Virus record (IMG/VR): IMGVR_UViG_3300025162_000016 | Span: 248,001 to 312,000 of that record | Strand: one strand, 5' to 3' | DNA length: 64,000 nucleotides | Shown: one piece after another, positions 12,603 through 59,294 of the stretch | Layout of the letters: the number at the start of each line of letters is the position of its first letter | Position numbering within the stretch: position 1 is the first letter of the stretch | Position numbers and translations under genes: made by a program | Notes under the pieces: generated by a model | What the model was told of the DNA's origin: nothing | The model's database searches: none | Seen by the model: the letters and a program-made list of their open reading frames with translations, nothing else

Positions 12603-12722
12603 AACATCGAAAAAGTTAAAATATTTTTGTGGTTGACAAATTGAGGTAATTGGTGTAGGATATTAAGAATGGTCGGAATTCCTCCCCGAGGCTAAAGCCG
12701 TCGGGGTTTCCTTCCTCCAAAA
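12601..12722. repeat. Orphan IS200/IS605-like left-end block containing a + strand sigma70 promoter
   Basis: Near-identical to 28814-28932 and similar to ~31357-31495; GGCTAAAGCC hairpin; TTGACA-17-TAGGAT. Confidence 0.8.
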
Positions 12723-12724
12723 CA

Positions 12725-12943
12725 ATGAATGAACCTAAAGTAGAATATCAATTAGAGAAAGCGGTCACCGGTAAAGTGGAAAAAAAAGTGCCGGTTGTAT
12801 TAGAAGATAAAGAAGGCAATAAAATTCGAGCCCCATGGGCACCAAAAGCAAATTGTAAACGGTGTCTCGGACGAGGTTATATGGGGATGTCAACTATAAC
12901 AAACGTATTACTTCCTTGTCGTAAATGTTATCCTTGGCAATGA
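12725..12943 (+). CDS. Small Cys-rich hypothetical protein
   Basis: CKRCLGRG...CRKC. Confidence 0.55.
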   Translation: MNEPKVEYQLEKAVTGKVEKKVPVVLEDKEGNKIRAPWAPKANCKRCLGRGYMGMSTITNVLLPCRKCYPWQ

Positions 12944-27290: not shown

Positions 27291-27647
27291 ATGCAATCTG
27301 AAAAAGGTGATAGCTATTGGACTCTTAAAAGTGAAATACTTACTCTAGAAGATTTTGAACTTCCGGATGGCAGATATATTGGTGCTACTATTGAGTTTAG
27401 TGGCATTTGGGAAGATGACGCATTTGATTATGAATATGGTAGTATCTGTGGCACTCATCGTGAAGATCCCTATTTTACCATAGAGAAGTGGTGGGTGACA
27501 GGTGTTTGGGATATGGCAACAAAAACCGCTATTCCAATGGATGATGTCATTCAAATCGCAATAGATAAAGAAATGGATATTATTGCCAATTCAGTTGCGA
27601 CTGAAGTCGAATTTCCCGAGCCGGATTGTCAACAACCCCTACCCTAA
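27291..27647 (+). CDS. Hypothetical acidic protein; 3' end interrupted by an IS right end
   Basis: Last codons run into the TnpB1 right-end hairpin. Confidence 0.55.
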   Translation: MQSEKGDSYWTLKSEILTLEDFELPDGRYIGATIEFSGIWEDDAFDYEYGSICGTHREDPYFTIEKWWVTGVWDMATKTAIPMDDVIQIAIDKEMDIIANSVATEVEFPEPDCQQPLP

Positions 27648-28932
27648 AGGGATAGGGGCTTGCCAGAGTTATGTCCGACAATTGGTGAGTTGACGTTCAC
27701 CTGTCCATCAAGTGCTTCACAGCACGAGTTGGAGTGTTTGCTTCCTCTTAATTTAATATTATTTGCAGCATTCAAGTCCGCATCTAATATAATTCCATCC
27801 GAAGCATAATACCTACAGCCCTTCCTCTTACCACTCTCAATTCCTCTATGGTCATTTTGACTGGTGAAGTAAGGCTTAACCATTTCCACTCTCTTCCCGA
27901 GAGATTGTGCTTTGTAGGTCAGTATGGTTTTTAACAAATAATAAGGTACTTGAGATTGTCTATTATTAAATTTCTTTCCCCTATTCTTTGATTTGATTTT
28001 CGATAAATCCTCAATAACAATCGTATTAGCATCATTTTTTAATAATGTATTAACGATATGATGTATGTAATTTTTACTAAAATTATGTTCTTTTCGTTTA
28101 AGTGTGTTTAATTTTTTCCTTGCCGAGTGAGAATGATTTTGTTTAGATTGAAGTTTTCGCTTGCTCCATCTTATTTTTCGCTTGTAAGTATTAAACTCAT
28201 TCCCCTTTATAATATCTCCTTCACTGGTTGCTACTAATCGTTTGATTCCCAAATCAAAACCAATAGATTTTTGATTATCAATAAACGAAGTTTCATCATT
28301 GAATACGACCGATAAATAGATATCATTGTTTTTAACAAAGAGAGATGGGTCTTGGAGTTTGTATTTAGCATACATTTCATTCAATTTATCATATGGAATA
28401 AAACTACAAACAATTCTTTTTGTATGAGTAGTGAGCTTGATTTTATCGTTACCAACCCATTTATATATTCTTTTATCTAAATTGATGGATAATTTATCGG
28501 TTTGTGGGGCTTCTTCTAACTGATGTTTATTTTTTCGGATAGCTTGATATTTTGATACAACATCTTGTTCTGCTTTGATAATAAATTGAGAAGGAATGGT
28601 TGGAATTGCTTCTTTAATTTTATAATAGCATCTATCATGGAGACCTTTAAGACCTTGGCATACATCCATTTCAAATCTAATTTTGGAGATTAGATTAAAT
28701 GCCTGTTTCTTCAGTTCTAAAGAATCAAGAAGAAGTTGTTTATCTTCTTTACTTTCAAATTGAAGTTTAATATTATAGGTCTTCACAATAAATAAATAGT
28801 GTTGTGAAACCGAAAACATCGAAAAATTAAAATATTTTTGTGGTTGACAAATTGAGGTGGTTGGTGTAGGATATTAAGAATGGTCGGAATTCCTCCCCGA
28901 GGCTAAAGCCGTCGGGGTTTCCTTCCTCCAAA
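27628..28932 (-). mobile_element. IS200/IS605-family tnpB-only element (TnpB1)
   Basis: Right-end hairpin CCCCTACCCTAAAGGGATAGGGG ending TTGAC; left-end GGCTAAAGCC hairpin; no tnpA. Confidence 0.8.
27644..28819 (-). CDS. tnpB: RNA-guided endonuclease TnpB
   Basis: GFDLG, IVIEDL, DADLNAA; lacks the CxxC Zn finger. Confidence 0.92.
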   Translation of the reverse strand: MFSVSQHYLFIVKTYNIKLQFESKEDKQLLLDSLELKKQAFNLISKIRFEMDVCQGLKGLHDRCYYKIKEAIPTIPSQFIIKAEQDVVSKYQAIRKNKHQLEEAPQTDKLSINLDKRIYKWVGNDKIKLTTHTKRIVCSFIPYDKLNEMYAKYKLQDPSLFVKNNDIYLSVVFNDETSFIDNQKSIGFDLGIKRLVATSEGDIIKGNEFNTYKRKIRWSKRKLQSKQNHSHSARKKLNTLKRKEHNFSKNYIHHIVNTLLKNDANTIVIEDLSKIKSKNRGKKFNNRQSQVPYYLLKTILTYKAQSLGKRVEMVKPYFTSQNDHRGIESGKRKGCRYYASDGIILDADLNAANNIKLRGSKHSNSCCEALDGQVNVNSPIVGHNSGKPLSL

Positions 28933-28937
28933 AAAAT

Positions 28938-30162: not shown

Positions 30163-31497
30163 GTCAACAACCCCTAGGCTAAAGCCATGGGGGCTTGAAA
30201 GACACCGAGCTTTCTCAGTGATTTATATTCATTCGGCGAATTGACTGTCGCCTGCCCATAAGTCAAACGGTTAGTTTGTGATATGGGATGTTTGGATAAT
30301 TTAGCAATGTTAATCGCTGCATTTATATCCGCATCGTATATCATTCCATTAACTTTAGAGTAAAATCTACAACCTCTTCTCTCACCTTCAACCTTGCCTG
30401 TTACGGAATCGGTTTTAGATGTGTTGTAAGGGCAAACGAGCAGAACAGTTTTACCTTGATTCTGTGCCTTATAGGTTATTACTCTACGAAGTTCAAATAA
30501 TGGAACTTGTGATATACTTCTTTTGTTTTGGTATTTATTTTTCTTTACTTTTATGGATTTGAGATTTTCTAAGCAAATTATGTCTGCTTCGGTATTGAGA
30601 ACGGAATTAGCAATTAGATGGGTCTGGTTTTTGTTTTGATTATGTTCTTTTCGTCTTAAAGAATATCTTAATTTTCTGCGGGCAGATTTTGTCCCCTTAG
30701 ATTTGAGGATGTCTTTTTGGTGTCTTAATCTTCGTTTACGTTCATTGAATTTTTTATCTATAATTAATTTTCCTTCGCTTGTTGCGGCAGACCTACGAAT
30801 ACCTAGATCGACTCCAATTGCCAATCTGGGTTTCAATTGAGGTTGTTTATTTTCAAATGACAAACAAATATAGATGTTTCCCATGTCCTCATAAATCAGA
30901 GGGTCTTGATAGGAATATTTATTAAGTAATTCTTTAAGTCGTGGATAAACCGTGAATTCAAATGTTTGTCTTTTATTTGCGGTTGTTATACGAATTGAAG
31001 ATTTATTTGGTATTGAATAAAGTCTTTTATCCAACCGCATTGATAATTTCTTTTTTTCAATCGGAGATTTTATTTTATGTTTATTTGATTTAACGGAACG
31101 ATACGACGAAATACATTCATTTAGAGAACGAATGATTACTTGTGATGTTATTTCGGGGTATTGTTTTCTAATATTATGATATACTTTGGAGTGTAATATT
31201 TTTGGAACAATTTTAGATTCGGAAAACTGTTCTTTAGAAGCAAAATTAAATACAAGTTTTTGATGTTCAAGCAACTTTTTAAGTTCGCTTGTATCACCGA
31301 TTAGTTTTGTATTATAAGTAATCATTTGTTACAACAATATATATCACACGATAAACGAAAACATCAAAAAAAGTTAAAATATGTGATTTATTTTATGGTT
31401 GACAAACTGAGGTGGTTGGTGTAGGATATTAAGAATGGTCGGAATTCCTCCTCTACCCTAAAGGGATAGAGGCTTCCTTCCTCCAAGAAAGTGAACA
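30163..31497 (-). mobile_element. IS200/IS605-family tnpB-only element (TnpB2)
   Basis: Right end ending TTGAC at 30163; left-end hairpin ~31447-31480. Confidence 0.8.
30174..31325 (-). CDS. tnpB: RNA-guided endonuclease TnpB
   Basis: GVDLG, ICLENL, DADINAA; no Zn finger; paralog of TnpB1. Confidence 0.92.
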   Translation of the reverse strand: MITYNTKLIGDTSELKKLLEHQKLVFNFASKEQFSESKIVPKILHSKVYHNIRKQYPEITSQVIIRSLNECISSYRSVKSNKHKIKSPIEKKKLSMRLDKRLYSIPNKSSIRITTANKRQTFEFTVYPRLKELLNKYSYQDPLIYEDMGNIYICLSFENKQPQLKPRLAIGVDLGIRRSAATSEGKLIIDKKFNERKRRLRHQKDILKSKGTKSARRKLRYSLRRKEHNQNKNQTHLIANSVLNTEADIICLENLKSIKVKKNKYQNKRSISQVPLFELRRVITYKAQNQGKTVLLVCPYNTSKTDSVTGKVEGERRGCRFYSKVNGMIYDADINAAINIAKLSKHPISQTNRLTYGQATVNSPNEYKSLRKLGVFQAPMALA

Positions 31498-31554
31498 AAA
31501 AAATTTGGAAATATAGTTGACTTTTTATAAATCTTCGGATAGAATATATCCAGC

Positions 31555-31854
31555 ATGAAATCAAAAACACTTCATCCTTACAAACCAAATTATTGCTCGC
31601 ATCCCGGTGAAACCCTTCTCGAAACTATAAACCAATATGGGCTTACCATATCTGAGTTTTCCAAACTGGTGGATGTTCCCCCGCTGAAAATTACTAACAT
31701 AGTTAATTGGCAAGCTCCGATCACCTTGACAATTGCCGAGAAGTTGGAAAACACCCTCCATATCTCATCCGATTTTTGGATGGCGATGCAAGAGAATTAT
31801 GATCGGTTTCAAAGGAATAGGTTGACAAAGACTATGCAATCTGATAGCATATAG
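31555..31854 (+). CDS. higA: HigA-like antitoxin / XRE HTH protein (orphan)
   Basis: HPGETLLE, HTH, IT..IAEKLE..L..S.DFWMAMQ.NYD. Confidence 0.8.
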   Translation: MKSKTLHPYKPNYCSHPGETLLETINQYGLTISEFSKLVDVPPLKITNIVNWQAPITLTIAEKLENTLHISSDFWMAMQENYDRFQRNRLTKTMQSDSI

Positions 31855-31856
31855 GA

Positions 31857-31892
31857 AGTAAAATGCCGGAACAGACCAGCCACTACATCACC
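31857..31892 (+). repeat. Solitary degenerate CRISPR repeat in the 5' UTR of ORF 31903
   Basis: 29/36 identity to the array repeat; begins ~6 nt after TTGACA-17-TAGCAT. Confidence 0.8.
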
Positions 31893-31902
31893 AACATATC
31901 AC

Positions 31903-32241
31903 ATGACTGATCAAGAAATAAACGTTGCAATTGCAACTGTGTGTGGAGAAGAATATCATGAACCTACCGGAGAAGAAATTAAATCTGGTAGTTATTATCA
32001 ATATCAGCCAAACTACACCGGCGACTTAAATGCGATTCATTCTGCATGGTCGCAATTATCCATCGCAAAACAGGTTCTGGCCTGTAGCGAGCTTGAACGC
32101 CTGTGCTATGGCCCTTGCGATACAAAATTGAGGGTCGTCAATGCAAGTGCTCGTCTGAAATCGGAAGCCTTTTTGCGGGCAGAAGGAAAATGGAAGACTA
32201 GTTCAAAAATGACACCCGCTCAGAAAGCTAGCCGAAAGTAA
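31903..32241 (+). CDS. Hypothetical phage protein
   Basis: MTDQEINVAIA...PNYTGDLNA motif common in phage proteins. Confidence 0.65.
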   Translation: MTDQEINVAIATVCGEEYHEPTGEEIKSGSYYQYQPNYTGDLNAIHSAWSQLSIAKQVLACSELERLCYGPCDTKLRVVNASARLKSEAFLRAEGKWKTSSKMTPAQKASRK

Positions 32242-32275
32242 AATCTGAGACTGTGACAGCGAAAGCGACAGGGGC

Positions 32276-32515
32276 GTGGAAATCGCCTGGGTGTCACCAT
32301 TTTTTAAAATTATGAAATTAAATGACCTACCACCATTAGATCAAGCAGAAATCATTGCAAACAGAATTGCCAATATGGATGCTCTACGGGAACACGCCTT
32401 GAAGAGTCGCAATCCAATTGAGTTGATGACGATTGAATTGGATGCACAGGCCAGACTTATGGGACTCAATATGGATTATTGTGAGGAATTAGATGATGAT
32501 GAATATGATCAATAA
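32276..32515 (+). CDS. Hypothetical protein
   Basis: Operonic ORF. Confidence 0.5.
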   Translation: MEIAWVSPFFKIMKLNDLPPLDQAEIIANRIANMDALREHALKSRNPIELMTIELDAQARLMGLNMDYCEELDDDEYDQ

Positions 32516-32517
32516 TA

Positions 32518-32724
32518 ATGACTAAATCACAACTACAAAAACACTTGGGGACCAAGCTAACATTTGAATTAGAAACATTCAGGATGTTATTTACGGACCT
32601 AGATGATAACCAACGTTTGGAATTAATCAAATCCCTTATTTGGACTTCGATTGACGCTCACGCTATGCATAAACGAGTTGTTAACGCAATTTTAAATCCT
32701 TCTTTTGAGAAAACACTTGATTAA
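32518..32724 (+). CDS. Hypothetical protein
   Basis: 5' end duplicated at ~33907-33955. Confidence 0.55.
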   Translation: MTKSQLQKHLGTKLTFELETFRMLFTDLDDNQRLELIKSLIWTSIDAHAMHKRVVNAILNPSFEKTLD

Positions 32725-32774
32725 CTCGGGAGCCAGCAAACCCCTGCCCTAAACATTTTATCTTGGCGGGAGCA

Positions 32775-32809
32775 GAAAACCCATCTGCTTTAGCGGGTGG
32801 GTAGTTCAT
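32775..32809 (+). repeat. Orphan IS605-type right end (TnpB3 family)
   Basis: GAAAACCCATCTGCTTTAGCGGGTGGGTAGTTCAT resembles the TnpB3 right end. Confidence 0.7.
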
Positions 32810-33011
32810 CAATATGAAAATTAGGCACATATATACAGTTATTAGAGAATACGAGATTGGTGCTGATGATCTCAAAGAAGAAATTGACTTTTTCAATGGT
32901 TCTATTATCGATGCATCGGGAGAATTTCTATATTCTGGAACTAGTGGGAAAGAAACAATCACAGTAAAAATGGAAATTGGAGATTAACATCAAAATACAG
33001 TTAAACAAAAT

Positions 33012-33431
33012 ATGACAAAATATAAAAAAATAATATGGGGTTTTGAACCTACTGATGATGTAACTTGTCTGGAACTTCCACAGAGGATTGCTTTTACTTT
33101 CGGTTATAATTGGGAAACGTCTACCATATATTCGAGAATGATTCCAATGGTTATAACTGATAAGAATTTTCGAGTTGGATTTGATCCCAACAGAAAATTA
33201 ATGAATCTGGTTAAGGATTATAAATCCTCGGAATATTTGGTAGTATGGACAGGTGAATTTTTGATTAAAATGTTAAATAATCCTCCGTTGAATCCAATAG
33301 TAATCGAATCTACTGACGGTAAACTATCGGTTCACATTGAATCGGATAATGTGGTTTTTGTGGATAGCGATAAGTCGATTCAAGTTAGTGTTCCAAAGAA
33401 ATTAGTACGGCAGACGGCGGGATTGTGTTAG
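33012..33431 (+). CDS. Hypothetical protein, paralog of ORF 34129
   Basis: Shares KI.W.F.P...QRIAF.FGY.W. Confidence 0.6.
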   Translation: MTKYKKIIWGFEPTDDVTCLELPQRIAFTFGYNWETSTIYSRMIPMVITDKNFRVGFDPNRKLMNLVKDYKSSEYLVVWTGEFLIKMLNNPPLNPIVIESTDGKLSVHIESDNVVFVDSDKSIQVSVPKKLVRQTAGLC

Positions 33432-33469
33432 TGTTCCAAAGAAATTAGTATGGCAGACGGCGGGATTGT
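33384..33469 (+). repeat. 43-bp tandem duplication at the gene end
   Basis: Two copies differing by one base. Confidence 0.9.
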
Positions 33470-33545
33470 TATTAAAATAGAATAAAGACTCCATCGAACG
33501 AAAGATGGGGCTTCTTTTTGTATATAGTTGGATATTTATATCTAT

Positions 33546-33887
33546 ATGATTAAACTTAAAGATATAATATTAGAATTTTTTGATAGATATTGGACATTGG
33601 AAATGGCTAAACCAATAGCCGATAAACTTGGGGCAAAAATAGTTGGTTCTGTTGCTAAATATGGAAAATCAAATCATGATTTAGATCTTAGAGTCGAACA
33701 TAATGACATTTTATCTATAACAAAAATTTTAAATATTTTGGGTTTTGAATCATATGGAAGTGAAGTAGTTTCACCAGAAGAAGCAAAAAAATCCAAAAAT
33801 ATATATGGAAAAGGTTGGCAAAGAGCATATAATTTTATAAATAAAGATGATAAAATAATTCAAATTTGGATGGATCAAAATGATTAA
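33546..33887 (+). CDS. Minimal nucleotidyltransferase-like protein with MIKLKDI N-terminus
   Basis: IVGSVAKYGKSNHDLDL matches hGS-x9-DhD. Confidence 0.6.
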   Translation: MIKLKDIILEFFDRYWTLEMAKPIADKLGAKIVGSVAKYGKSNHDLDLRVEHNDILSITKILNILGFESYGSEVVSPEEAKKSKNIYGKGWQRAYNFINKDDKIIQIWMDQND

Positions 33888-33955
33888 ATTAAAAGATATA
33901 ATAGATATGACCAAATTACAACTACGAAAACACTTGGGGACCAAGCTAACATTTG

Positions 33956-34074
33956 ACAATGTGGAACTTGCGAAATATGGCGTTTGATGTTGACAAATCA
34001 GGGATAATAGAATACATTACCGCTCGCAAATTGATACACGGTTTTTTGATAATACGATAGTTACAATGGATACA
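33956..34074 (+). promoter_or_regulatory. Second copy of the CRISPR leader with promoter
   Basis: Homologous to the reverse complement of ~50345-50463; TTGACA-17-TACATT, CCGCTCGCAAATTGATACAC. Confidence 0.9.
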
Positions 34075-34110
34075 GGTGAAGTGCTGGAACAGATCAGATA
34101 CTATATCACC
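34075..34110 (+). CRISPR. Solitary CRISPR repeat after the duplicated leader
   Basis: 34/36 identity to consensus. Confidence 0.9.
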
Positions 34111-34128
34111 ACCACCCAGAATAAAAAT

Positions 34129-34680
34129 ATGAAAAATATGAAAAATATGAAAAACTACAGGAAAATAGTATGGTCATTCAATCCTTCGATTGACAGCGAA
34201 GTCATTCAGAGGATTGCATTTAGTTTCGGATACGATTGGGAGGACAATGACAGTTATGATGCTCTGACTAAGATAATTTTTTCTGAGGAGAGGATGATGT
34301 TTGATCCTAACACAAAGAAAATCTCGGCGGTTCATTGTAAATATGATTGCACACACACACGTTGGACGTCTAGTCTGCCCCATTTCATGGAATCCCTCAA
34401 AGACCCTCCTGAAATTATTCCAACTGTCTCTTCACCGGCACCGGATACAAAATCGAATCTAAACTTTCCGGTGGTCAGCTTTATGTATCACGACAAGATT
34501 CGTCGGGTTCGGGTTACTAAAATGTATGATAACCACCTGGAAGGGTTTGAAACCTCCTGTGGCGGGAAACCCTACCTAATAGAATCCTACAAGAAATATC
34601 GGATTGATGAGATGGAATCCGATGTTGTCTTGATAAGTTTCGTGCAAGATATTCCCAAAACTATAGATTACGAACCATGA
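34129..34680 (+). CDS. Hypothetical protein between two CRISPR repeats; possible C-terminal WYL-like domain
   Basis: FMYHDKIRRVRV...YKKYRID pattern. Confidence 0.55.
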   Translation: MKNMKNMKNYRKIVWSFNPSIDSEVIQRIAFSFGYDWEDNDSYDALTKIIFSEERMMFDPNTKKISAVHCKYDCTHTRWTSSLPHFMESLKDPPEIIPTVSSPAPDTKSNLNFPVVSFMYHDKIRRVRVTKMYDNHLEGFETSCGGKPYLIESYKKYRIDEMESDVVLISFVQDIPKTIDYEP

Positions 34681-34811
34681 CTAAAGATGAGTTGCAAGAA
34701 ATCCTAATGCAGTGCTGGCATAGGGAAACATCGGTGGATGACGCATTGGACGCCATCTGTGGAGAAACGATGGTCGAGGAAACGCTGTGACTGAATGCAG
34801 ACGAATTGCGT

Positions 34812-34847
34812 GGTGAAGTGCTGGAACAGACCAGCTACTATATCACC
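34812..34847 (+). CRISPR. Solitary CRISPR repeat
   Basis: 35/36 identity to consensus. Confidence 0.9.
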
Positions 34848-34965
34848 TTGTATGGTATGAATGATTGCTGGAACCCGGTTGACCTAGCGGCTGAATATGA
34901 TGCTCTCATAGTTCAACCGGAAAACGATTGACAAATTAATATAATTCTGATAGTCTTTACCCACA

Positions 34966-35298
34966 ATGAAAAACGAACAATTGAAGTGGTTTCCATATTA
35001 CCAGAATAACAGCGGGGGCACGCTCCTAATTGACAACGAGGTTGCCGAGACAGTATATGTCCAAGCTCATTCCGCCAATGAGGCGAATAAAATTGCTGAA
35101 TCACATGGTATCTATTTCGACGGTTGCACCGAGGGAACAGATTGTTCCTGCTGTGGAGATCGTTGGAGTCGAACTATTGACCGATGCGGAACGGATGTTC
35201 CCTGCCACTATGGGAAGCCGATTTCGTCGTGGGACGTGCCTGACAACGGAGTTGATAAGACTCGCCGTTATCGACGGTTTCATCGGTTCGGTCTGTGA
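34966..35298 (+). CDS. Conserved phage hypothetical protein
   Basis: Y.QNNSGG...GIYFDG...DC.CCGDRW motif. Confidence 0.7.
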   Translation: MKNEQLKWFPYYQNNSGGTLLIDNEVAETVYVQAHSANEANKIAESHGIYFDGCTEGTDCSCCGDRWSRTIDRCGTDVPCHYGKPISSWDVPDNGVDKTRRYRRFHRFGL

Positions 35299-35343
35299 AT
35301 CGGGCTTGACTTATTATAATAATTCTGATAGTCTTTACCCAAG

Positions 35344-35637
35344 ATGAAAAACACACAAAGCAATGACGTGATGACTAAAGACGAGATGCAAAAACTCCTA
35401 ATGCAGTGCTGGCATAGGGAAATATCGGTGGAAGAAGCTATGGCATCATTTATCTGGGTAGAACCGCTGGTCGAGGAAACGCTGGGAACGAATGTCGAGG
35501 TTAATGATGAGTGTCTTGAGGCTTTGCAGCCGGTAGATAAAAAAACAGATGATTTTTATTACACTGGAATCCCTGACATAGATATGCGGCGGGTGATTCA
35601 AATGGAAGCCAATAGAATATATTCAGATCGAAGTTGA
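35344..35637 (+). CDS. Hypothetical protein
   Basis: Cassette promoter; truncated paralog at ~34677-34790. Confidence 0.6.
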   Translation: MKNTQSNDVMTKDEMQKLLMQCWHREISVEEAMASFIWVEPLVEETLGTNVEVNDECLEALQPVDKKTDDFYYTGIPDIDMRRVIQMEANRIYSDRS

Positions 35638-35671
35638 CATTGTATAATAATTCTGATAGTCTTTACCCAAG

Positions 35672-35872
35672 ATGAGCACAGACTATATAAACAGATCAGA
35701 ATTTGACGGATTAACGGATTGGCAGAAGCGGTTGTTGATGCGTTGGGGCCGGCGATATGGAGCAGGTTATCCTCCCGGCAGGCCGTTGGCCTTGGCTTCC
35801 ATGAAATTCAACAAGCGATATAGTTATGATCGAATTGACCAGAGGTTTATAAACTGGCTTTACACTTACTAA
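35672..35872 (+). CDS. Hypothetical protein
   Basis: Cassette promoter. Confidence 0.6.
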   Translation: MSTDYINRSEFDGLTDWQKRLLMRWGRRYGAGYPPGRPLALASMKFNKRYSYDRIDQRFINWLYTY

Positions 35873-35927
35873 AATAATTCAGATCGAAGTTGACATTTTA
35901 GAATAACTCTGATAGTCTTTACCCGAG

Positions 35928-36155
35928 ATGAAAAACGAAGAACTTGTATTATTGCTTAAGGCTGCATTTGCGGCGGGGTTCCGTTACGGGCACGACGCCG
36001 GGGCGGATGCAGAATGGGGCCATGGATGTTCAATAAGTAACAAGCCACAAACGCCGGATAAGGCGTGGTCGGAGGATGTCCAATGGAGGATCGACACCGA
36101 TAGTAGTTATCACCTGGATGTTGAAAACCGAGAGCATTGGAACAACGTTCCATAG
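35928..36155 (+). CDS. Hypothetical protein
   Basis: Cassette promoter. Confidence 0.6.
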   Translation: MKNEELVLLLKAAFAAGFRYGHDAGADAEWGHGCSISNKPQTPDKAWSEDVQWRIDTDSSYHLDVENREHWNNVP

Positions 36156-36203
36156 ATAGCAGACAATGGTTGACTTATTATAGAACCGTGGATTATTATT
36201 TAT

Positions 36204-36509
36204 ATGAAAACATTTTTATCATACGAAGAAATCCAAATTGGCACTTGGTGGGAAATTGCCCAAGGTGGCGAATATGGTTATTGCGTTATTGGAAAAAATG
36301 ATCAAACTATATCCAAGATGAATAACGAAACATTTGAAACTTTCGATTGTGGAGACAAAGTAGATGTTCGCTGGCGACATGATTCTGATTTCAATGATGA
36401 CTTTACCGGGCGAGTTGTGGAGTTTAGAGGTAAGTATATCATCGTTGAAGATCAAGCCGGTGACTGTTGGAGTTGTGATCCCGGGCAGATTAGTTTGAAT
36501 ACGGATTAG
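36204..36509 (+). CDS. Hypothetical protein
   Basis: TTGACT promoter near 36171. Confidence 0.55.
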   Translation: MKTFLSYEEIQIGTWWEIAQGGEYGYCVIGKNDQTISKMNNETFETFDCGDKVDVRWRHDSDFNDDFTGRVVEFRGKYIIVEDQAGDCWSCDPGQISLNTD

Positions 36510-36581
36510 TGATTGGTAAACAATAAATAAATTCAGATCGAAGTTGACATTTTAGAATAACTCTGATACTCTTTACCCAAG

Positions 36582-36821
36582 ATGAAAAACGAAAACGAAA
36601 ACGAAATAACGAACGAAAACTTAATCCTAAATTGTCTTCTCCGTGAGCCGATGCGGGTGCATACGACGCTTGCTAAAAAGTGGCTACACCAGAATCAAAC
36701 AATCATCATGGGCGGCGTGGTTCGTTATTTGGCTATCCGCCCCCTGGGATTAGGTATCTTCGAAATAAAAGTCGCACCCGTTACCGTTCGATCAACCGAA
36801 ATGACAAACAATGAAGATTAA
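36582..36821 (+). CDS. Hypothetical protein
   Basis: Cassette promoter. Confidence 0.6.
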   Translation: MKNENENEITNENLILNCLLREPMRVHTTLAKKWLHQNQTIIMGGVVRYLAIRPLGLGIFEIKVAPVTVRSTEMTNNED

Positions 36822-37206
36822 AGATTTGATGATTAACGATTTGATCAAAAACTACACCGAGTTGCTAAACGTCCTAATAGCGGAGCCAATGACGCCGGAG
36901 GACACACAGCAAGCATACATCCTCAAGAAGGTAGTTGAGGATTTGAAAATGGTAAAAAACTATAAAAATAAAAATTGAGGCCATGAAAAAAGACATGTCA
37001 TCAAAGGCACAGAACCAACGCCTACTTCGGCGGTTGGCGTATGCTTATAGCACACCGACACGCCGGATTCGATTCGAGCGGGAAGTGAAAAAAGCGAACG
37101 AGCGGTGGAATGTGGCATACCCGGCTCGAACGAAAGTTTAGGTTGGGCTTGACTTATTATAATAACTCTGATACTCTTAGGGAGTTAAATATAAAACACT
37201 AAAAAG

Positions 37207-37410
37207 ATGAAAACACGTATATTTAAAGATCGAGATGGAGTCAGTAGAATAGATATGGGGCTTTCAAAGCCACGACGGTTTGTTTATATATTACATTGTT
37301 GTGCCGCCGATCAGAGACGTGCAAAACGGCAGGGTCAAGGACGAATTAACGCCTTAGTATATTTTGTGGTCAGTGCCATAAAACAAACATGGGCATGTTG
37401 GGGACGGTAA
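37207..37410 (+). CDS. Hypothetical protein
   Basis: After the promoter at 37149. Confidence 0.45.
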   Translation: MKTRIFKDRDGVSRIDMGLSKPRRFVYILHCCAADQRRAKRQGQGRINALVYFVVSAIKQTWACWGR

Positions 37411-37413
37411 AAT

Positions 37414-37719
37414 ATGCGTTTTAAACCCCCCATTAAAATAGTTCTTCCCATACTGGCATGTGGAGCGGTGATTGCATCTGTAATATTTATGACGGGGCGG
37501 GAAATAGTTAAAGTTTTTCCAAAACTACCGTCACCGGGTGATCTATATACAGATTTTCACTCCAGTCCGTGGAAATGGCGAAATACTAATACAATTTTAG
37601 AAATAAAATCCGGCTGGGTTCGATACGTTGACTTGAACGGCAAAACAAACGAAGCTTCTGTTTCAAGGTTTCGTAGCGTCTATTCCTACGTTGGAACTGT
37701 GCCAAAGAATCACAAATGA
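37414..37719 (+). CDS. Membrane-anchored hypothetical protein
   Basis: N-terminal TM helix. Confidence 0.5.
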   Translation: MRFKPPIKIVLPILACGAVIASVIFMTGREIVKVFPKLPSPGDLYTDFHSSPWKWRNTNTILEIKSGWVRYVDLNGKTNEASVSRFRSVYSYVGTVPKNHK

Positions 37720-37756
37720 GTGTTGACAATTAGAAAAATATCGGTATAATGTTCCT

Positions 37757-38101
37757 ATGAATGAAATATACGAATATGTGAGAACACAAAAGGGCAGTAG
37801 TGTGTTTGTTAATAGTCACGGACAAAAACGTCGCCGTGGTGGAGAGCCAATTGGCGTCGTTCTAGCAACGGTATTAACAAATAGTGATTGTCCAAAAATC
37901 GTTTTTGGTTGGAGTAAAGCTAACCAAAAAAGCGGTGACATTTTTGATAAAGCAAAGGGAATTAATATCGCTCGCACTAGAGCTATTTATGGATTGCCTA
38001 AGAATATCAAAATTCCTGCCGAAGTCGCAAAAGCCCAAGCATGGCTGGCAACTCGGGCAGTTAAATACTTTAAAGGCGCAATTGTTGGGGAAACATGTTG
38101 A
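37757..38101 (+). CDS. Conserved phage hypothetical protein
   Basis: GWSK...D.FDK..G..IA..RA motif; leaderless promoter. Confidence 0.65.
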   Translation: MNEIYEYVRTQKGSSVFVNSHGQKRRRGGEPIGVVLATVLTNSDCPKIVFGWSKANQKSGDIFDKAKGINIARTRAIYGLPKNIKIPAEVAKAQAWLATRAVKYFKGAIVGETC

Positions 38102-38136
38102 CAATTAGAAAAATATCGGTATACTTATAAAGTAAT

Positions 38137-38212
38137 GCTTCGGTAGCTCAGTTGGAAGAGCAATCGGCTTTTAATCGATTGGTCGTGAGTTCGAGTCTCA
38201 TCCGGAGCACCA
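38137..38212 (+). tRNA. tRNA-Lys(UUU)
   Basis: Cloverleaf, anticodon loop CTTTTAA, encoded CCA. Confidence 0.95.
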
Positions 38213-38217
38213 ATTTT

Positions 38218-38305
38218 GCCGGTGTGGCGTAATGGCAGCCGCACAAGACTTAAAATCTTGGGACTATAAAAAGTTGTGCGGGTTCAAGTCCCGCCACCGG
38301 CACCA
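38218..38305 (+). tRNA. tRNA-Leu(UAA)
   Basis: Long variable arm, loop CTTAAAA, CCA. Confidence 0.95.
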
Positions 38306-38312
38306 ATTCATT

Positions 38313-38390
38313 GCTCCCGTAACTCAGTTGGATTAGAGTAGTGTTTTTCTAAAACACGAGTCGCAGGTTCAAGTCCTGCCGGGAGTACCA
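38313..38390 (+). tRNA. tRNA-Arg(UCU)
   Basis: Loop TTTCTAA, CCA. Confidence 0.93.
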
Positions 38391-38394
38391 ATTT

Positions 38395-38466
38395 GGCCCG
38401 TTCGTTTATCAGCTAGGACATAGGATTTTCAATCCTAAAAAGAGAGGGCGGCACTCTCACGGGCTA
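38395..38466 (+). tRNA. tRNA-Glu(UUC) with atypical T-loop
   Basis: Acceptor GGCCCGT/ACGGGCT, loop TTTTCAA, T-loop GGCGGCA, no encoded CCA. Confidence 0.7.
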
Positions 38467-38630
38467 CAAATTTTGTTCTTTGATCGAGTAATGGTCCTCG
38501 GAAACAATCTGAAATATGGTTGAAAAGGTTCCGTAGGATAAGTGTGATAGCGGTGTAGCGTTAGAAGGACTAACTAACCTTTCGCTCGCAATGCGGTTCA
38601 CACTAAAACGGGGGAGTAACCTATACCATT

Positions 38631-38667
38631 ACTCTATTTGATTTTACAGTATGGGCGGCGTCTGATA
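38631..38667 (+). repeat. 37-bp direct repeat, copy 1 (copy 2 at 40006-40042)
   Basis: ACTCTATTTGATTTTACAGTATGGGCGGCGTCTGATA identical in both. Confidence 0.9.
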
Positions 38668-38759
38668 AATTTATAATTTTATGGCCGTAACTCAAAATAT
38701 TTTTCATTTATTTCAGGAATCTTGTTGACATTGACCAAGAATTCCTGTATATTATATCC

Positions 38760-38933
38760 ATGATGAAAAACGAAAACACCGGTTATGATATAACGGTTGG
38801 TGATTCGGGTATATGTCCAAATTGTGGGCTTTATTTTGATGCTCCGCAGATAAACGATGAGGGTGAAGATGGTATATGTCCACATTGTGGGCTTTATCTC
38901 AATTATGCTGATGATCCGCAGGAGGACAATTGA
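38760..38933 (+). CDS. 57-aa double Zn-ribbon protein
   Basis: GICPNCGLY and GICPHCGLY repeats; promoter directly upstream. Confidence 0.6.
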   Translation: MMKNENTGYDITVGDSGICPNCGLYFDAPQINDEGEDGICPHCGLYLNYADDPQEDN

Positions 38934-39108
38934 TGATCCGCAGTCATAAATTCACTTTCTTGGAGCAAGGAAGCCCCTATCCCTTTAGGGTAGGGGGGGA
39001 GGAATTGTGACCAATCTAAAATAATTGAAAATAATTTAATGTTTCGTAAATCTTCCCCATAAACAAAATTTGTTGTGTTTTTGAAATAACCACACATATG
39101 TATTACAT

Positions 39109-39786
39109 ATGAAATACAACGAAGAGAAAGCCCAATGGTATAGAATATGTCCATTCTGTAAAAATGAAATATATCATAAATCAAAAAGTAGTTGCCAAGT
39201 ATGTGAACGAAGAAGCAGGTCTTGCCTTCAATGTCTTCCAAAGTTAGTCAAATGCACTGTATGCGGTAAACAAGGTCATACGAAGAGATTTCACGATGTT
39301 ATACCTACAGAAAAAGTATGTTCTTTATGTAAACACAATTTACCGATAGAAAATTTCTATTATAGAAATAAAAAAAGAAAAAATGGTAAGTTGAATTATA
39401 GTCCCTATTGTAAAACGTGTGAACAAAAAAAATACAATGAAAGATTCAATAGTTCTCCCGAAAAAAGAGCAATCATATTATGGAACTCGACAAAAATTAG
39501 ATGTAAAAAAGAAAATGTTCCATTTTCAATAAGTGTTGAAGACATCATCAATCAATATAAACTCCAAAATGGAAAATGTTTTTATAGTGAACAACTTATG
39601 TCTCCCATTGCTAAATCACCAACAAAGATGAGTATTGATAGAATTGATTCTTCTAAAGGATATACAAACGAAAACATCGTATTATGCACTTGGAGAATAA
39701 ATGCAATGAAAAATAATGATTCTCAAGAAAGTTTCATTTCTATGTGTAATCAAATAAGTAGATTTTCAAATGATAGGAAATTTTAA
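39109..39786 (+). CDS. Zn-finger plus HNH-like endonuclease
   Basis: Multiple CxxC; CFYS...SIDRIDSSKGY..N..LC...N.MK. Confidence 0.7.
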   Translation: MKYNEEKAQWYRICPFCKNEIYHKSKSSCQVCERRSRSCLQCLPKLVKCTVCGKQGHTKRFHDVIPTEKVCSLCKHNLPIENFYYRNKKRKNGKLNYSPYCKTCEQKKYNERFNSSPEKRAIILWNSTKIRCKKENVPFSISVEDIINQYKLQNGKCFYSEQLMSPIAKSPTKMSIDRIDSSKGYTNENIVLCTWRINAMKNNDSQESFISMCNQISRFSNDRKF

Positions 39787-40006
39787 TATGGTTGGCAAAC
39801 GTGTAAAAGGAACGTGTAGGTATGTAGGAGTAGATAACAAGATATTAGATGCCGATATAAATGCTGCAAATAATATAAGAAACCGTTATCTTCAACTTCC
39901 CTCCAGTATGTGTAAAAACTTAATGGAAGGGCAGGCTATAGTCAAAGAGCCTTATGCTGGAAACTTGTCTGGCAAGCCCCAACCCTTTAGGGTTGTGGGT
40001 AATTGA
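39770..40006 (+). pseudogene. C-terminal remnant of tnpB
   Basis: KGTCRY...ILDADINAANNI matches the TnpB1 C-terminus. Confidence 0.8.
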
Positions 40007-40026
40007 CTCTATTTGATTTTACAGTA

Positions 40027-40100
40027 TGGGCGGCGTCTGATAGCTCTACAACGGGTTGCTCCGTTGAACACTAAATAATGACGAGAATTCCCGCCCACCA
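40027..40100 (+). ncRNA. tRNA-like element (non-canonical)
   Basis: GGGCGG/CCGCCC acceptor plus ACCA and a CAACGG/CCGTTG stem, but no normal T-arm. Confidence 0.35.
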
Positions 40101-40107
40101 ATTTTAT

Positions 40108-40184
40108 AGCAATGTAGCTCAATTTGATAGAGCGTGTCTTTTATAAAGGCTTGGTTGTGGGTTTGAGTCCCACCATTGCTACCA
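40108..40184 (+). tRNA. tRNA-Ile(UAU)
   Basis: Acceptor AGCAATG/CATTGCT, loop TTTATAA, CCA. Confidence 0.85.
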
Positions 40185-40254
40185 TTTTCCATCGTTTGCT
40201 TATTCCGCCTCTTAACACCAGTCAAGTTTTTGTATATCAAATTCAATATTAAAT

Positions 40255-40503
40255 TTGTTGACAAGTAATCAACTATCTGATAGATTATCCCTAATGGAAA
40301 CCGAAGAAACTGAGAATCACAATGTATATGAGTTAGGAGTTGTTTCTGGAAAGCGAGACAATAAGATTTGCTTCAATTATGATCCAACTCGCTGGACTAC
40401 TTATAATAGATTAGAGCAGGAACAGGATTTAATTAGATTAGCATTGTTTGTAGAAGGGTATACCGAAGGATATGGAGTCCAACTGCTTGGTAAACTTGAT
40501 TAA
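40255..40503 (+). CDS. Hypothetical protein (likely start 40294)
   Basis: TTGACA...TCTGA-TAGATT promoter. Confidence 0.5.
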   Translation: MLTSNQLSDRLSLMETEETENHNVYELGVVSGKRDNKICFNYDPTRWTTYNRLEQEQDLIRLALFVEGYTEGYGVQLLGKLD

Positions 40504-40677
40504 TTATGATGTATTCTGAAATTTCGGTTGAGGTTTTAATTTTCTTTAATTTATTGGCATTTTTAATTGGATATAATTTCGGGAGAAATGGTAATTTTAA
40601 ACTATGATGTTCATAATTTCCATAATTATTACATTCCTAATAGGATATATTTCCGGAAGAATTGACGAATCCCTCCC

Positions 40678-40860
40678 ATGAAAATAAAAAATGAGTGTTG
40701 GTTTTGTAGTAAGCATATCACCCCGTCCAAAACATGGACTATTCAGTTGAAAAGTCAGTTTAGAACAATTGGATTATATTGTTCGGAGAAATGTGCTAAA
40801 TATGATTCTTGGGGTCCGCTATATAAATATAGCACGCCGGTAAGACTGACAAAAGCTTGA
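40678..40860 (+). CDS. Small Zn-binding hypothetical protein
   Basis: CWFC...YCSEKC. Confidence 0.45.
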   Translation: MKIKNECWFCSKHITPSKTWTIQLKSQFRTIGLYCSEKCAKYDSWGPLYKYSTPVRLTKA

Positions 40861-40891
40861 CTTGTTATAATAACTCTGACACAATATTATT

Positions 40892-41089
40892 GTGATTAAA
40901 ACTACAATAACCGTTCCCGCCGTGGAAATCTCCCGTGAGGAACGAGAAGACATGTTGGCAAGGTGGATAAAGTACGGAGTTTTACCGCCAGATGTTTTAG
41001 ATTGGAATATCGACGCTAACCCAGAAACAATGCGGTTTGTGGGTGACTTTTGTCAGCGAGTGGTAGTTGAATCAAAAATTAAAAAATGA
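40892..41089 (+). CDS. Hypothetical protein
   Basis: Cassette-type promoter at ~40858. Confidence 0.45.
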   Translation: MIKTTITVPAVEISREEREDMLARWIKYGVLPPDVLDWNIDANPETMRFVGDFCQRVVVESKIKK

Positions 41090-49168: not shown

Positions 49169-49369
49169 ATGACTATTTCAATTAAAACCGCATCTCGTAA
49201 AGATATTCAGCAGTTCCAACGATGGGTTAAGTTACAACCTTGGTCTGAAATATCTTTTCTCCACGAAACTTACCTCCGAGATGATTGCCGTGAAGAAAAA
49301 TTGAAAATTCTCTTCGCCAAATTCTCCGCTCTACCACTAAATCAACGGTTTCCAGCGGGTGATAGGTGA
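49169..49369 (+). CDS. Small hypothetical protein converging on the array trailer
   Basis: TTGACT-17-TACATA promoter; stop codon lies inside the terminal repeat. Confidence 0.45.
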   Translation: MTISIKTASRKDIQQFQRWVKLQPWSEISFLHETYLRDDCREEKLKILFAKFSALPLNQRFPAGDR

Positions 49370-50344
49370 TATAGTGACTGGTCTGTTCCAGCACTTCACC
49401 GGCGAAGCACCTGCTCGGCAAGGACCGCTACCACGAGGTGGTGATATAGTAACTGGTCTGTTCCAGCACTTCACCATTACCGATGTTTCTTTATAGCATA
49501 TACATATAACGGCGGTGATATAGTAACTGGTCTGTTCCAGCACTTCACCTAGGCGACTGAGTTAGGGGCTTTTCCTATATAGCGGTGGTGATATAGTAAC
49601 TGGTCTGTTCCAGCACTTCACCTGAATATGCATTGCCTCTGGTGCAACAATTCGGATAGGTGATATAGTAACTGGTCTGTTCCAGCACTTCACCCAGATA
49701 GAAGATGATAAACCGGATTCTCTACTGATGGTGATATAGTAACTGGTCTGTTCCAGCACTTCACCTTGAAAGGATACCATAGGAAGGATATGTATTACTC
49801 ATGGTGATATAGTAACTGGTCTGTTCCAGCACTTCACCTAGAGTTTGCTTTTGATGAAAGCCAATATGCTGCGGGTGATATAGTAACTGGTCTGTTCCAG
49901 CACTTCACCTCTTTTTTTATTGCTCTATGAGCAGAGACTTGGCTCTGGTGATATAGTAACTGGTCTGTTCCAGCACTTCACCTCTTTTTTTATTGCTCTA
50001 TGAGCAGAGACTTGGCTCTGGTGATATAGTAACTGGTCTGTTCCAGCACTTCACCGTAGAGTTCAGCACTTGGAATATCCATTACTATGATAGGTGATAT
50101 AGTAACTGGTCTGTTCCAGCACTTCACCCATATTTTCCAGTTGGTTCGGGCAAATCAATCGTGGGTGATATAGTAACTGGTCTGTTCCAGCACTTCACCT
50201 TCTTTACTCCATTCCCAGAAGGCTAATGCGAGCGGTGGTGATATAGTAACTGGTCTGTTCCAGCACTTCACCAAATGCAAGTTATCACTATATTTCGCCA
50301 ACTCGAACGGTGATATAGTAACTGGTCTGTTCCAGCACTTCACC
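49365..50344 (-). CRISPR. CRISPR array: 14 repeats (36 nt, GGTGAAGTGCTGGAACAGACCAGTTACTATATCACC as transcribed), 13 spacers of 35-39 nt
   Basis: Read directly; variant trailer repeat at 49365; spacers 49910-49946 and 49983-50019 identical. Confidence 0.99.
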
Positions 50345-50465
50345 TGTATCCCTCGTAAGTAACGTATTATCAAAGAACTGTGTATCAATTTGCGAGCGGC
50401 AGTGTATTCTATTATCCCCGGTTTGTCAACATCAAATATCATATTTCGTAAGTTCCATATTATCA
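50345..50465 (-). promoter_or_regulatory. CRISPR leader with sigma70 promoter
   Basis: Minus-strand TTGACA-17-TACACT; CCGCTCGCAA motif recurs at ~50390, ~50480 and inverted at ~50514. Confidence 0.85.
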
Positions 50466-50523
50466 GCGAGTTACAAGTTGCGAGCGGCTACGGCATATTT
50501 GACGCCACCTAACCGCTCGCAAA

Positions 50524-52800
50524 TTAACATAAAAGTCCCAGCTCAATATCATAATTAATATGATAGTTATTCAATGCCCACATTGTAATTGGGTCATCGG
50601 CATCGTCCCGAATTTTCTCTAGCGGTTCAATAATTCCGGCATTAAGTAATCGTTGGTGTACATTTCCAAATACCGTTACCGAATTTCTGCTAATATCCGC
50701 ATATCCGAGGGTAATATCTTTAGATTTAATTCTTTCAATGACAGTCGGATCGATTACAACTGTAAATTTTTGAGTTTTTATCAATCGCATTAAATTACCT
50801 ACGGTGCGGAGATTTCCCTTGGAAAAGTTATCTTCAATCCGAGAAATCATATTCCAATTGCTAGTTGTTAACGTGTCTCTCGCTGCCGATGTTCCCATTG
50901 CCGGAATCCATTCATTTTTTTCTAATTTACGAAATACATTAATCGCTCTTTGTGTCGTAGGATTAATAGTTATTGTTCCCTTTCGGATTAATGATTCAGA
51001 AAAACAAAAAACATATACTTTTCCGATTTTAAATTCATTATTCCTATTACATCTTCCGGTGCATTGTTGAAGTGAATCTAAACTGGTTTCTTCTCGATAA
51101 CACCGCTCAAATGATATATCAATACCACATTCTACCATTGAGGTGGCAATTAATATGACCGGTAATTCATCTTTTATTTTTTGTTTTATTAATTCCAATC
51201 TTTTTTCTCTAAACTCCGGTGTCACTCGACTACTCAAATGATAGACATTCCCATTTCCGCTATTCAATAATTTAAATAAAACCTTCGCATTATTAGTGGT
51301 ATTACATACTATTAAAGTAGAATGTTTGTTTTTATATCCATTAGTTATATGCCGACATAATTTACCTAATCCAATAGCTCCCAGATGCGATTTTTTAACC
51401 CGTGTATTTTCTCTCGCCTGAAAATGCTTCCATTCCGTATGTGTAAGCATATTATCCACTACTATATTTTTATGATATAAATCCCAAAAATCAATGGGAG
51501 TCCCGGAACTAAAAATAACGTGAACATTATAATTGTTTACTAATTTTTCTAATAAAAATAACGCATGTGACCATAATTCATATGGCATCGCTTGATGATA
51601 CTCATCAAGAACAATGACCGAATCCGTAAAATGAATGAGTTTCCCTATCGCTGCGGGATGATAAGTAGTCAATGCCTCGAAAAATTGCACGCAAGTAGTA
51701 TACGTTAATGGACCATCTAATCTATTATTATATTTTCGCAACCGCCAATCTGTAAACTGAACCATAGAATGATGCTCGTTAATAACCCCTACCTGATACT
51801 CTCCCGGTAACAAAAGAGATTCTTTTGCTTTACCAACAAGTTGATTGATAACATTAATATATGGGGCCACAATAAATATTCGTTCACACCCATATTTTTT
51901 TGCCATTTTCAATGCCTTTTTATGATTAGCATTGGTTTTACCCGAACCTACCGTACCATCGTTTTTTATCCAAGATGAGATAGATTCCCTATCCGCCGAC
52001 GCATAAAGAAGCTTCCGATCTTTAATTCTTTTACCGGGATTTATTTTACTTAATCCATCATTATATTTATCAAAATTTTCAATACGCTCATCCTCTCGAA
52101 GTTTATATGGCTCAGGTAGCACATATCCATCATTACGAAATTGATTGGTGTCGGCGTGATCAGCAGACACCATGCAGGAAAAACACTCTGATATATCATG
52201 CCAATCAACATTTTTAATATTAATGTTATACCCAACATCCGGCATTGAATCCGTAATAATTATATCTTCTTTATGTAGTTGTTCCCATATAATAAGATTA
52301 GCATCTACATAATCTCTTATACGATAATCCCGCCATTTTTCTTTAAGATGTATTTTGGTCGGCGATAACATTTGTGACGGATTAACAAGAGTAATTTTAG
52401 TTAATTCTTCCCAATCTATATAACCAATATGATGAGCCAATATCAGCCACGCTGCTAAAAGATAATATAATTCATTGGTTCGTTCATATTCCTTAATACA
52501 ATGCGATACTCCTGCATCAACATGGTTAAGCATTGACGTATCGCTTTCGCTTGATTGTGAAAGAATTGCTTGACATTCCGGCATCAATTTTCCCAAATCA
52601 TGCCATTCTGTAGCAGTTTCAAGTATTTTCCGATAGAAATTTACCATTTTTCTATTCTTATAATGACGAAATCTACGATCAAACTCCCGCAAGGCGTTAT
52701 TACGTACCGCATGAATGTGATCCCGATATAATTGCGGAGCAACTGTACGGTTCGATGCGTTCACCTGATAACCGGAATGGGCAAAATTTTCTGTCAGCAT
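50524..52800 (-). CDS. cas3: Cas3 helicase-nuclease (HD + SF2)
   Basis: DH, WHDLGK, NH..AG, AHH, SADH; GSGKT, APYINVINQ, DEYH, SGT, NT, ATSMVECGID, QCTGRCNR. Confidence 0.93.
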   Translation of the reverse strand: MLTENFAHSGYQVNASNRTVAPQLYRDHIHAVRNNALREFDRRFRHYKNRKMVNFYRKILETATEWHDLGKLMPECQAILSQSSESDTSMLNHVDAGVSHCIKEYERTNELYYLLAAWLILAHHIGYIDWEELTKITLVNPSQMLSPTKIHLKEKWRDYRIRDYVDANLIIWEQLHKEDIIITDSMPDVGYNINIKNVDWHDISECFSCMVSADHADTNQFRNDGYVLPEPYKLREDERIENFDKYNDGLSKINPGKRIKDRKLLYASADRESISSWIKNDGTVGSGKTNANHKKALKMAKKYGCERIFIVAPYINVINQLVGKAKESLLLPGEYQVGVINEHHSMVQFTDWRLRKYNNRLDGPLTYTTCVQFFEALTTYHPAAIGKLIHFTDSVIVLDEYHQAMPYELWSHALFLLEKLVNNYNVHVIFSSGTPIDFWDLYHKNIVVDNMLTHTEWKHFQARENTRVKKSHLGAIGLGKLCRHITNGYKNKHSTLIVCNTTNNAKVLFKLLNSGNGNVYHLSSRVTPEFREKRLELIKQKIKDELPVILIATSMVECGIDISFERCYREETSLDSLQQCTGRCNRNNEFKIGKVYVFCFSESLIRKGTITINPTTQRAINVFRKLEKNEWIPAMGTSAARDTLTTSNWNMISRIEDNFSKGNLRTVGNLMRLIKTQKFTVVIDPTVIERIKSKDITLGYADISRNSVTVFGNVHQRLLNAGIIEPLEKIRDDADDPITMWALNNYHINYDIELGLLC

Positions 52801-59198: not shown

Positions 59199-59294
59199 AA
59201 TAAGACGTAAGACGAAACAAGTAATCATTGACAAAATAAAAAATATCGGTATAGTTAGTAAAGTTAAGCGATTAAACAAATAAAACAATAAAAA

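Follow-up and report, generated by a model that had tools for sequence, protein, structure and literature searches.

Positions 31857-31892 of the window, the 64,000-nt stretch of phage DNA analyzed here, carry a solitary CRISPR repeat, now decayed, of the phage's own Cas12/Cas3 system, lying between a sigma-70-type early promoter and a NinX-like gene. This copy lacks the hairpin that Cas12 would need, and a relic serving as a plain leader is therefore more likely than a working Cas12 switch. The tentatively preferred reading, held at a little short of even confidence, is that a relic repeat now acts as an unstructured leader, probably with a uORF followed by reinitiation, and that Cas12 control of the gene is at most weak.

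Arrangement of promoter, repeat, and gene

The repeat unit at 31857 follows a HigA-like helix-turn-helix gene (31555-31854, plus strand) that encodes 99 aa and matches the NCBIfam family antidote_HigA (E 1e-15) and PHROG 1381. The final 11 codons of this gene contain a predicted early promoter (31822-31850, plus strand) composed of a -35 element TTGACA (31822-31827), a 17-nt spacer, and a -10 element TAGCAT (31845-31850) that is extended by a TG at 31842-31843, for a score of 10/12. The higA-like stop codon falls 2 nt before the repeat, and the predicted +1, A31857, lies six nt beyond TAGCAT on repeat base 1. A sequence-only reading of this DNA had proposed just such a TTGACA-17-TAGCAT promoter with its predicted +1 on the first base of a degenerate repeat, and the sequence at 31822-31857 is as claimed. 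The unit (31857-31892, plus strand) is a 36-nt homologue of the array repeat in the transcribed orientation and thus belongs to the phage repeat family; it shares 29 of its 36 bases with the array repeat, and its seven changes are all transitions. It is a single unit, 17 kb from the nearest array and without a neighboring repeat.

The ATG of the downstream gene, P0002 (31903-32241, plus strand; 112 aa), lies 10 nt past the repeat, again as the earlier reading had it, and this start codon is backed by homologues opening MTDQEI. P0002 is related to the phage NinX-like family, and its own family is widespread in phages. Searches of the repeat-led genes against Pfam, NCBIfam, and PHROG returned no matches. 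Because 31857-31892 fills the gap between promoter and start codon, it forms nearly the whole of the predicted 46-nt leader, which bears out the idea of a degenerate CRISPR repeat, here in the sense orientation of the crRNA, as a predicted 5' UTR. The second example that had been put forward, ORF 34129, also holds: its ATG lies 18 nt past the repeat at 34075-34110, which has 2 mismatches. Between unit 31857 and position 32253 no terminator is found, and the unit runs into the ORF. A possible weak terminator, a hairpin followed by T6, is present at 32253-32305 (plus strand), with an MFE of -15.4 and a z of -0.09, like that of shuffled sequences.

Repeat matches with at most 12 mismatches number zero in shuffles of the 84-kb record, and the 17-nt repeat core with at most three mismatches is found 27 times in the window against an expectation of 0.04. 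A promoter scoring 10/12 places its +1 on a given intergenic base at 0.7% of positions; among the 20 solitary repeats of the phage, two (31857 and 59172) have a promoter of at least 10/12 with +1 on base 1 (p ~0.009). The promoter ahead of unit 31857 is also in register with a local family of conserved early promoters (alignment A2) and, on sequence grounds, is unlikely to have arisen by chance. DNA contigs aligned on the locus show the same sequence without variation. Apparent joints near 34036-34813, considered as deletions, were rejected as cross-mapping of paralogous leader and array repeats. A separate 116-nt repeat with a strong promoter-like site occurs at 12611-12726, 28822-28937, and 31377-31492; it adjoins the TnpB genes at 27644-28819 and 30174-31325, and the copy at 31377-31492 sits just upstream of higA.

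Translation context of the leader

The G7-to-A change in the repeat creates an AUG that opens a 15-codon uORF (MPEQTSHYITNISHD; 31863-31910, plus strand). This ATG, at 31863, lies 6 nt from the predicted 5' end and 12 nt past the -10 element, and the uORF stop codon, TGA at 31908-31910, overlaps the P0002 start (ATGACTGA). By rough estimate, a uORF would end on the start codon by chance in a few percent of cases. The phage shows no Shine-Dalgarno signal, with 29 of 311 genes preceded by such a sequence against a background of 11.6%. In the local early promoter family, TTGACA-N14-cTGATAGtcT (31516-40909 of the window), the ATG follows only 9 nt past the -10 hexamer, close to the place that ATG 31863 takes here, so the early mRNAs would be nearly leaderless. 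The pairing of near-leaderless mRNAs with TTGACA/TATAAT-type promoters is unusual.

The phage and its CRISPR-Cas12/Cas3 locus

At 100% identity, the window corresponds to positions 248001-312000 of IMGVR_UViG_3300025162_000016, a complete phage of 368,758 bp with direct terminal repeats that comes from metagenomes of lakes and fresh water. The genes it carries are phage-like, among them DNA ligase, polymerase, RNA ligases, NAD-synthesis genes, ThyX, PstS, tRNAs, and many TnpB genes. The plus strand carries about 80% of its coding sequence, and intergenic DNA makes up 18% of the genome. A search against Rfam found tRNAs only. The tRNA cluster at 38137-38466 and 40108-40184 comprises ARAGORN calls for Lys-UUU, Leu-UAA, Arg-UCU, and Ile-UAU, with a fifth, weaker tRNA match from Rfam at 38395-38466.

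The CRISPR array in the window (49365-50344, minus strand) has 14 repeats of 36 nt and spacers of 35-39 nt. Its 179-nt leader (50345-50523, minus strand) carries a TTGACA-17-TACACT promoter and follows cas3 (50524-52800, minus strand), which encodes an HD nuclease and helicase of 758 aa. Divergent to cas3 is the gene for the Cas12-like effector P0001 (52917-55928, plus strand), a 1003-aa protein with a TnpB-type RuvC/TNB domain whose best solved relatives in the PDB are Cas12j19 and Cas12X (E 3e-7); GIDLG, AMENL, and HADVNAS were taken by eye for the three RuvC motifs. A large RuvC/TNB protein thus adjoins the array with a conserved cas3 neighbor, as expected of a type V system. Three more arrays occur elsewhere in the phage, each behind a homologous leader, for a total of four; neither cas1 nor a second effector was found in the phage. 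The divergent cas12/cas3 pair is kept, at 55-58% identity, in all three distant relatives found (L033, L034, and L035), and a Cas12h variant with a gained Cas3 is mentioned in a PNAS 2023 survey (PMC10691335).

Duplicate spacers occur within arrays, one in the window array (49910-50019) and one as a two-spacer block in array 4 (L030:13100-13729). No self-targeting by the array spacers was found, and protospacers were found neither in GenBank phages nor, for the two spacers searched there, in IMG/VR. No array of this repeat family was found among 185,579 species genomes, which gave two single matches taken for chance.

The repeat hairpin and its loss in unit 31857

The canonical repeat folds into one end-to-end hairpin of 12 pairs with an MFE of -13 kcal/mol. 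In an alignment of 28 distinct units from this phage, from L034 and L035 (distant relatives of its Cas12), and from L050 (a solitary unit of another metagenome), 86.6% of cells are paired, versus 73% in shuffles and 14-50% in slid controls. Changes on both sides are seen in 8 of the 12 hairpin pairs across these units. The outer stem covaries between GGTGA/TCACC, GTTGA/TCAAC, and AGTGA/TCACT, and the inner stem between CTGG/CCAG and ACCG/CGGT. G-U pairs are seen only in the transcribed orientation set by the array leaders. Together, the covariation and the strand-specific G-U pairs indicate that the hairpin is a real, selected feature of the transcript. The case for it is carried by covariation across the family, as a per-unit simulation of structure preservation was significant for one unit only (63353). 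The hairpin is presumably the Cas12 handle, for which it is the obvious candidate.

Unit 31857 is among the two most decayed copies and retains 8 of the 12 pairs. Its fold has an MFE of -3.5 kcal/mol versus -13 kcal/mol for the canonical repeat, with a z of -0.8 against shuffles, and the whole predicted leader (31857-31915) has a z of +0.3; for the unit at 34075, the values are -11.7 kcal/mol and -2.5. Four of the seven transitions, at positions 1, 4, 7, and 11, break pairs without compensation, and the relatives' repeats show no variation at positions 1, 4, and 7. Random transitions leave a mean of 10.2 pairs, compared with the 8 of unit 31857. The loop (GGAACAGACC) and the 3' tail (ATCACC) are kept, and the inner stem gains a G-C pair through the T24-to-C change. 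Even weakened, the inner hairpin might thus remain recognizable.

Solitary repeats across the phage

The phage carries 20 solitary repeat units outside its arrays, all of them intergenic, plus-strand, and sense-oriented, with 15 of them concentrated within 279-315 kb, around the cas locus. The notion that every solitary unit sits on a +1 was rejected, since this is so for 2 of the 20. Four precede substantial ORFs, with repeat-to-AUG distances of 10, 18, 27, and 40 nt. With so few units placed on a +1 or ahead of a substantial gene, a role as 5' UTR operator cannot be a general one. Several units are non-coding, and some of the solitary repeats are trailed by a strong hairpin.

Two solitary repeats (34075 and G001:229885; alignment A1) lie behind a copy of the array leader and run into a gene. 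In the window, this arrangement (33990-34110, plus strand) consists of a TTGACA-17-TACATT promoter and about 57 nt of leader followed by the near-intact repeat 34075-34110, which retains 12 of 12 pairs with its 2 mismatches. The gene behind it, P0003 (34129-34680, plus strand), encodes 183 aa, and an ATG at 34066 is in frame with P0003 through the repeat. A further solitary repeat with 1 mismatch is found at 34812-34847 (plus strand), 737 nt downstream of the repeat at 34075; the two bracket P0003 and a small ORF in a spacer-like manner.

The remaining units in the window, all on the plus strand, begin with a decayed repeat (55930-55965; 9 mismatches) located 1 nt past the cas12 stop codon. 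In L034, a decayed sense repeat (L034:5720-5755) lies 32 nt past the cas12 stop, and the placement in both cases recalls that of omega-RNA at the 3' end of tnpB. Two solitary repeats with duplicated upstream flanks are found within 56154-56390, a perfect copy at 56154-56189 and one with 3 mismatches at 56355-56390. Of the two within 59083-59207, that at 59172 stands behind TTGATA-16-TATAAT with its +1 on base 1. Two more, of the AGTGA...TCACT type, fall within 61895-62067, and four (63190, 63268, 63353, and 63735) within 63190-63770, with a strong hairpin after 63268. Most AGTGA-type units are preceded by a T, giving a TAG across the junction, and in two cases (59082-59084 and L029:14769-14771) this TAG is the stop codon of an upstream open frame, of 62 and 193 codons. 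Interspersed among the solitary repeats are five tandem iterons of 49 nt and repeated TCTAAGGTTAGA palindromes (56751-57121, 59001-59027, and 61966-61992), in a stretch that looks like an origin or operator region; a C-rich tract (56398-56415) and a G-rich tract (57140-57180) lie nearby.

Trans targets of the post-repeat sequences were sought with blastn-short, with 18-mers at up to 3 mismatches, and with 11-nt seeds, and in the cas3-cas12 promoter region; neither the phage nor the cas3-cas12 intergenic region gave a match above chance. Two long matches, from 56154 to 56024 and from G001:314770 to 313490, were rejected as duplicated promoter or iteron DNA.

Relatives and evolution of the locus

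A 97% identical strain, L071, has the same higA-repeat-gene layout and the same seven repeat changes. Its repeat differs at one additional position, as does the 10-nt spacer behind it, and its uORF is still open. A mosaic relative, L069, encodes an 80% identical P0002 homologue without a repeat, and this gene starts 4 nt past the stop codon of the preceding gene. The 3' two thirds of the two genes are 95% identical in DNA sequence, and the 5' end and upstream region are unrelated. The drift in L071 and the repeat-less gene of L069 indicate that the repeat is neither needed for P0002 nor being kept intact. The start codon adjoins an upstream stop codon in both contexts, and the gene in L069, judged by its position, is likewise placed where termination-reinitiation could serve.

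In L035, a truncated copy of the cas12 N-terminus is followed by a two-repeat mini-array in the cas12 5' UTR and then by cas12 itself (L035:4871-5440). The spacer of this mini-array matches cas12 codons at 30 of 37 positions, has its mismatches at spacer positions 5-17 and a TTT immediately 5' of the match, and could serve in autoregulation or be directed against a rival's cas12. Together with the decayed repeats after the cas12 stop in this phage and in L034, the mini-array supports some Cas12-RNA link in the family. A solitary family member with a covarying stem also occurs at the end of a plus-strand gene block on an unrelated 3-kb metagenome contig (L050:2522-2557), with an ATG directly in front in the same frame as those at 34066 and 31863. 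Apart from this contig, single 17-mer or pattern matches in other viral and metagenome contigs were rejected as coding-sequence coincidences without a hairpin.

Possible roles of unit 31857

In the preferred account of unit 31857 as a relic leader, the seven transitions would have abolished the hairpin to leave an unstructured leader in a phage that does without Shine-Dalgarno sequences. Ribosomes would enter at AUG 31863, near the predicted 5' end, read the 15-codon uORF through the former repeat, terminate at the UGA, and begin anew at the start codon of the gene that overlaps it (AUGACUGA). Cas12 should bind intact units, of which 34075 is an example. The exact placement of +1 on repeat base 1, seen also at 59172, looks like design rather than accident and counts against the relic reading. 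The sequence-only reading had instead suggested a translational switch coupled to Cas12 levels, with Cas12 binding or cleavage covering the start codon as if it were spacer. In a fuller form of this model, Cas12 would bind the 5' repeat of the mRNA like the handle of a crRNA, perhaps trimming it, and take some 20 nt that include the AUG at +10 into its guide channel; translation would fall as Cas12 accumulates, making the leader an early-to-later timer. The same phage does encode the cognate Cas12 and arrays, and the sense repeat, the predicted +1 on base 1, and the AUG within guide distance all fit such a switch, as do the conserved loop and 3' tail of the unit and the two repeats in the cas12 5' UTR of L035. 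Engineered Cas12a repeats placed in mRNAs reportedly control expression (PMC9943656). The switch is nonetheless unlikely at this locus: four of the 12 covarying pairs are broken, three of them at the family-invariant positions 1, 4, and 7, the close strain shows drift rather than conservation, the relative's gene works without a repeat, and the 10-, 18-, 27-, and 40-nt intervals provide no common repeat-to-AUG distance. The unit at 34075, with its hairpin intact, is a far better candidate for a Cas12 switch.

In another reading, the promoter would make a repeat-headed, Racr- or crRNA-like RNA that loads into Cas12, either as a titrating decoy or as a hard-wired guide with the beginning of the gene for its "spacer"; the ORF would be incidental. 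The many non-coding units elsewhere in the phage are compatible with this idea, and the locus places an HTH gene and small early genes side by side, as in acr/aca loci. Such an RNA is rather improbable here, however, given the broken hairpin, and the Cas12 to be inhibited would be that of the phage itself. No array of the repeat family was found among the 185,579 species genomes, which leaves the RNA without a known host system to act against; nor does the pseudo-spacer, the seed part of which is non-conserved leader sequence, have a target above chance in the phage or the cas promoter region. Alternatively, the repeat might be a processing or punctuation site at which Cas12 cuts higA read-through RNA, a cut that would part the higA cistron from the NinX-like one and determine how stable each is. 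The position of the repeat, which begins 2 nt past the higA stop codon, is echoed by units 1 nt past the cas12 stop (55930) or overlapping the stop of an upstream frame (59083 and G001:314770). RNA processing by this Cas12 is only presumed, however, the hairpin is again broken in unit 31857, and the downstream gene has a predicted promoter of its own, all of which makes a cleavage site very improbable. In a broader alternative, the approximately 20 sense repeats would have been built into the phage's transcripts, in leaders, between cistrons, after the cas12 stop, and as promoter-driven small RNAs. Cas12, with Cas3, would double as a post-transcriptional regulator or processing factor of a CRISPR-derived RNA regulon in which unit 31857 is a weakened or retired member; this, too, is unlikely.

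Comparison with known systems

Viral solitary repeat units (SRUs) are single repeat-like units located outside an array and directly behind a predicted promoter, and they act as RNA anti-CRISPRs (Camara-Wilpert et al. 2023, PMC10651486). These Racrs are small non-coding RNAs that mimic host repeats and have no association with cas genes (PMC10651486). Unit 31857 shares with them its status as a lone repeat outside an array with a predicted promoter directly upstream. It differs in that the phage has a cognate Cas12, cas3, and four arrays and that no host with the repeat was found; moreover, the unit runs into an ORF and has lost the repeat structure, with 8 of 12 pairs remaining.

A second class consists of crRNA-like regulators, including CreR/CreA, crlRNA, viral Cracr, and the repeat-like units upstream of cas12a (Shmakov et al. 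2023, 10.1101/2023.03.03.530964; Liu et al., 10.1101/2024.10.29.618823). These regulators act in trans through guides partly complementary to a promoter and usually comprise two repeat-like units around one spacer (10.1101/2023.03.03.530964; 10.1101/2024.10.29.618823). The likeness lies in the degenerate repeat that stands by itself, within or close to a type V locus, and links expression to the effector, and the L035 mini-array ahead of cas12 resembles this class. In contrast, unit 31857 is single, no promoter target was found for it, and the action proposed for it is in cis, on its own mRNA. The mechanism put forward by the sequence-only reading is that of engineered Cas12a direct repeats in mRNAs (e.g., PMC9943656), in which the fate of the mRNA reportedly depends on Cas12 binding or processing; those repeats are synthetic and intact, whereas unit 31857 is natural and degraded. 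Collapsed or terminal arrays offer a further comparison. A leader with one repeat, as at 34075 and G001:229885, resembles the remnant of repeat-repeat recombination, and leader-distal repeats decay in a similar way; unit 31857, however, is without leader homology and lies behind a different, gene-type promoter.

Viral solitary repeats have so far been understood as weapons against host CRISPR, either as Racr decoys or as cas-silencing guides. No description of a phage with a cognate effector, arrays, and many sense solitary repeats fused to its own genes was found in the open-access literature. The new twist is that the phage bearing the solitary repeats itself carries the cognate Cas12; the copy at 31857, read as a relic, is by itself of modest weight. 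Should Cas12 act on these RNAs, they would represent a natural CRISPR effector regulating its owner's mRNAs in cis, an arrangement for which only engineered examples are known so far. Otherwise, the locus illustrates how arrays shed repeats that are then eroded or reused as leaders.
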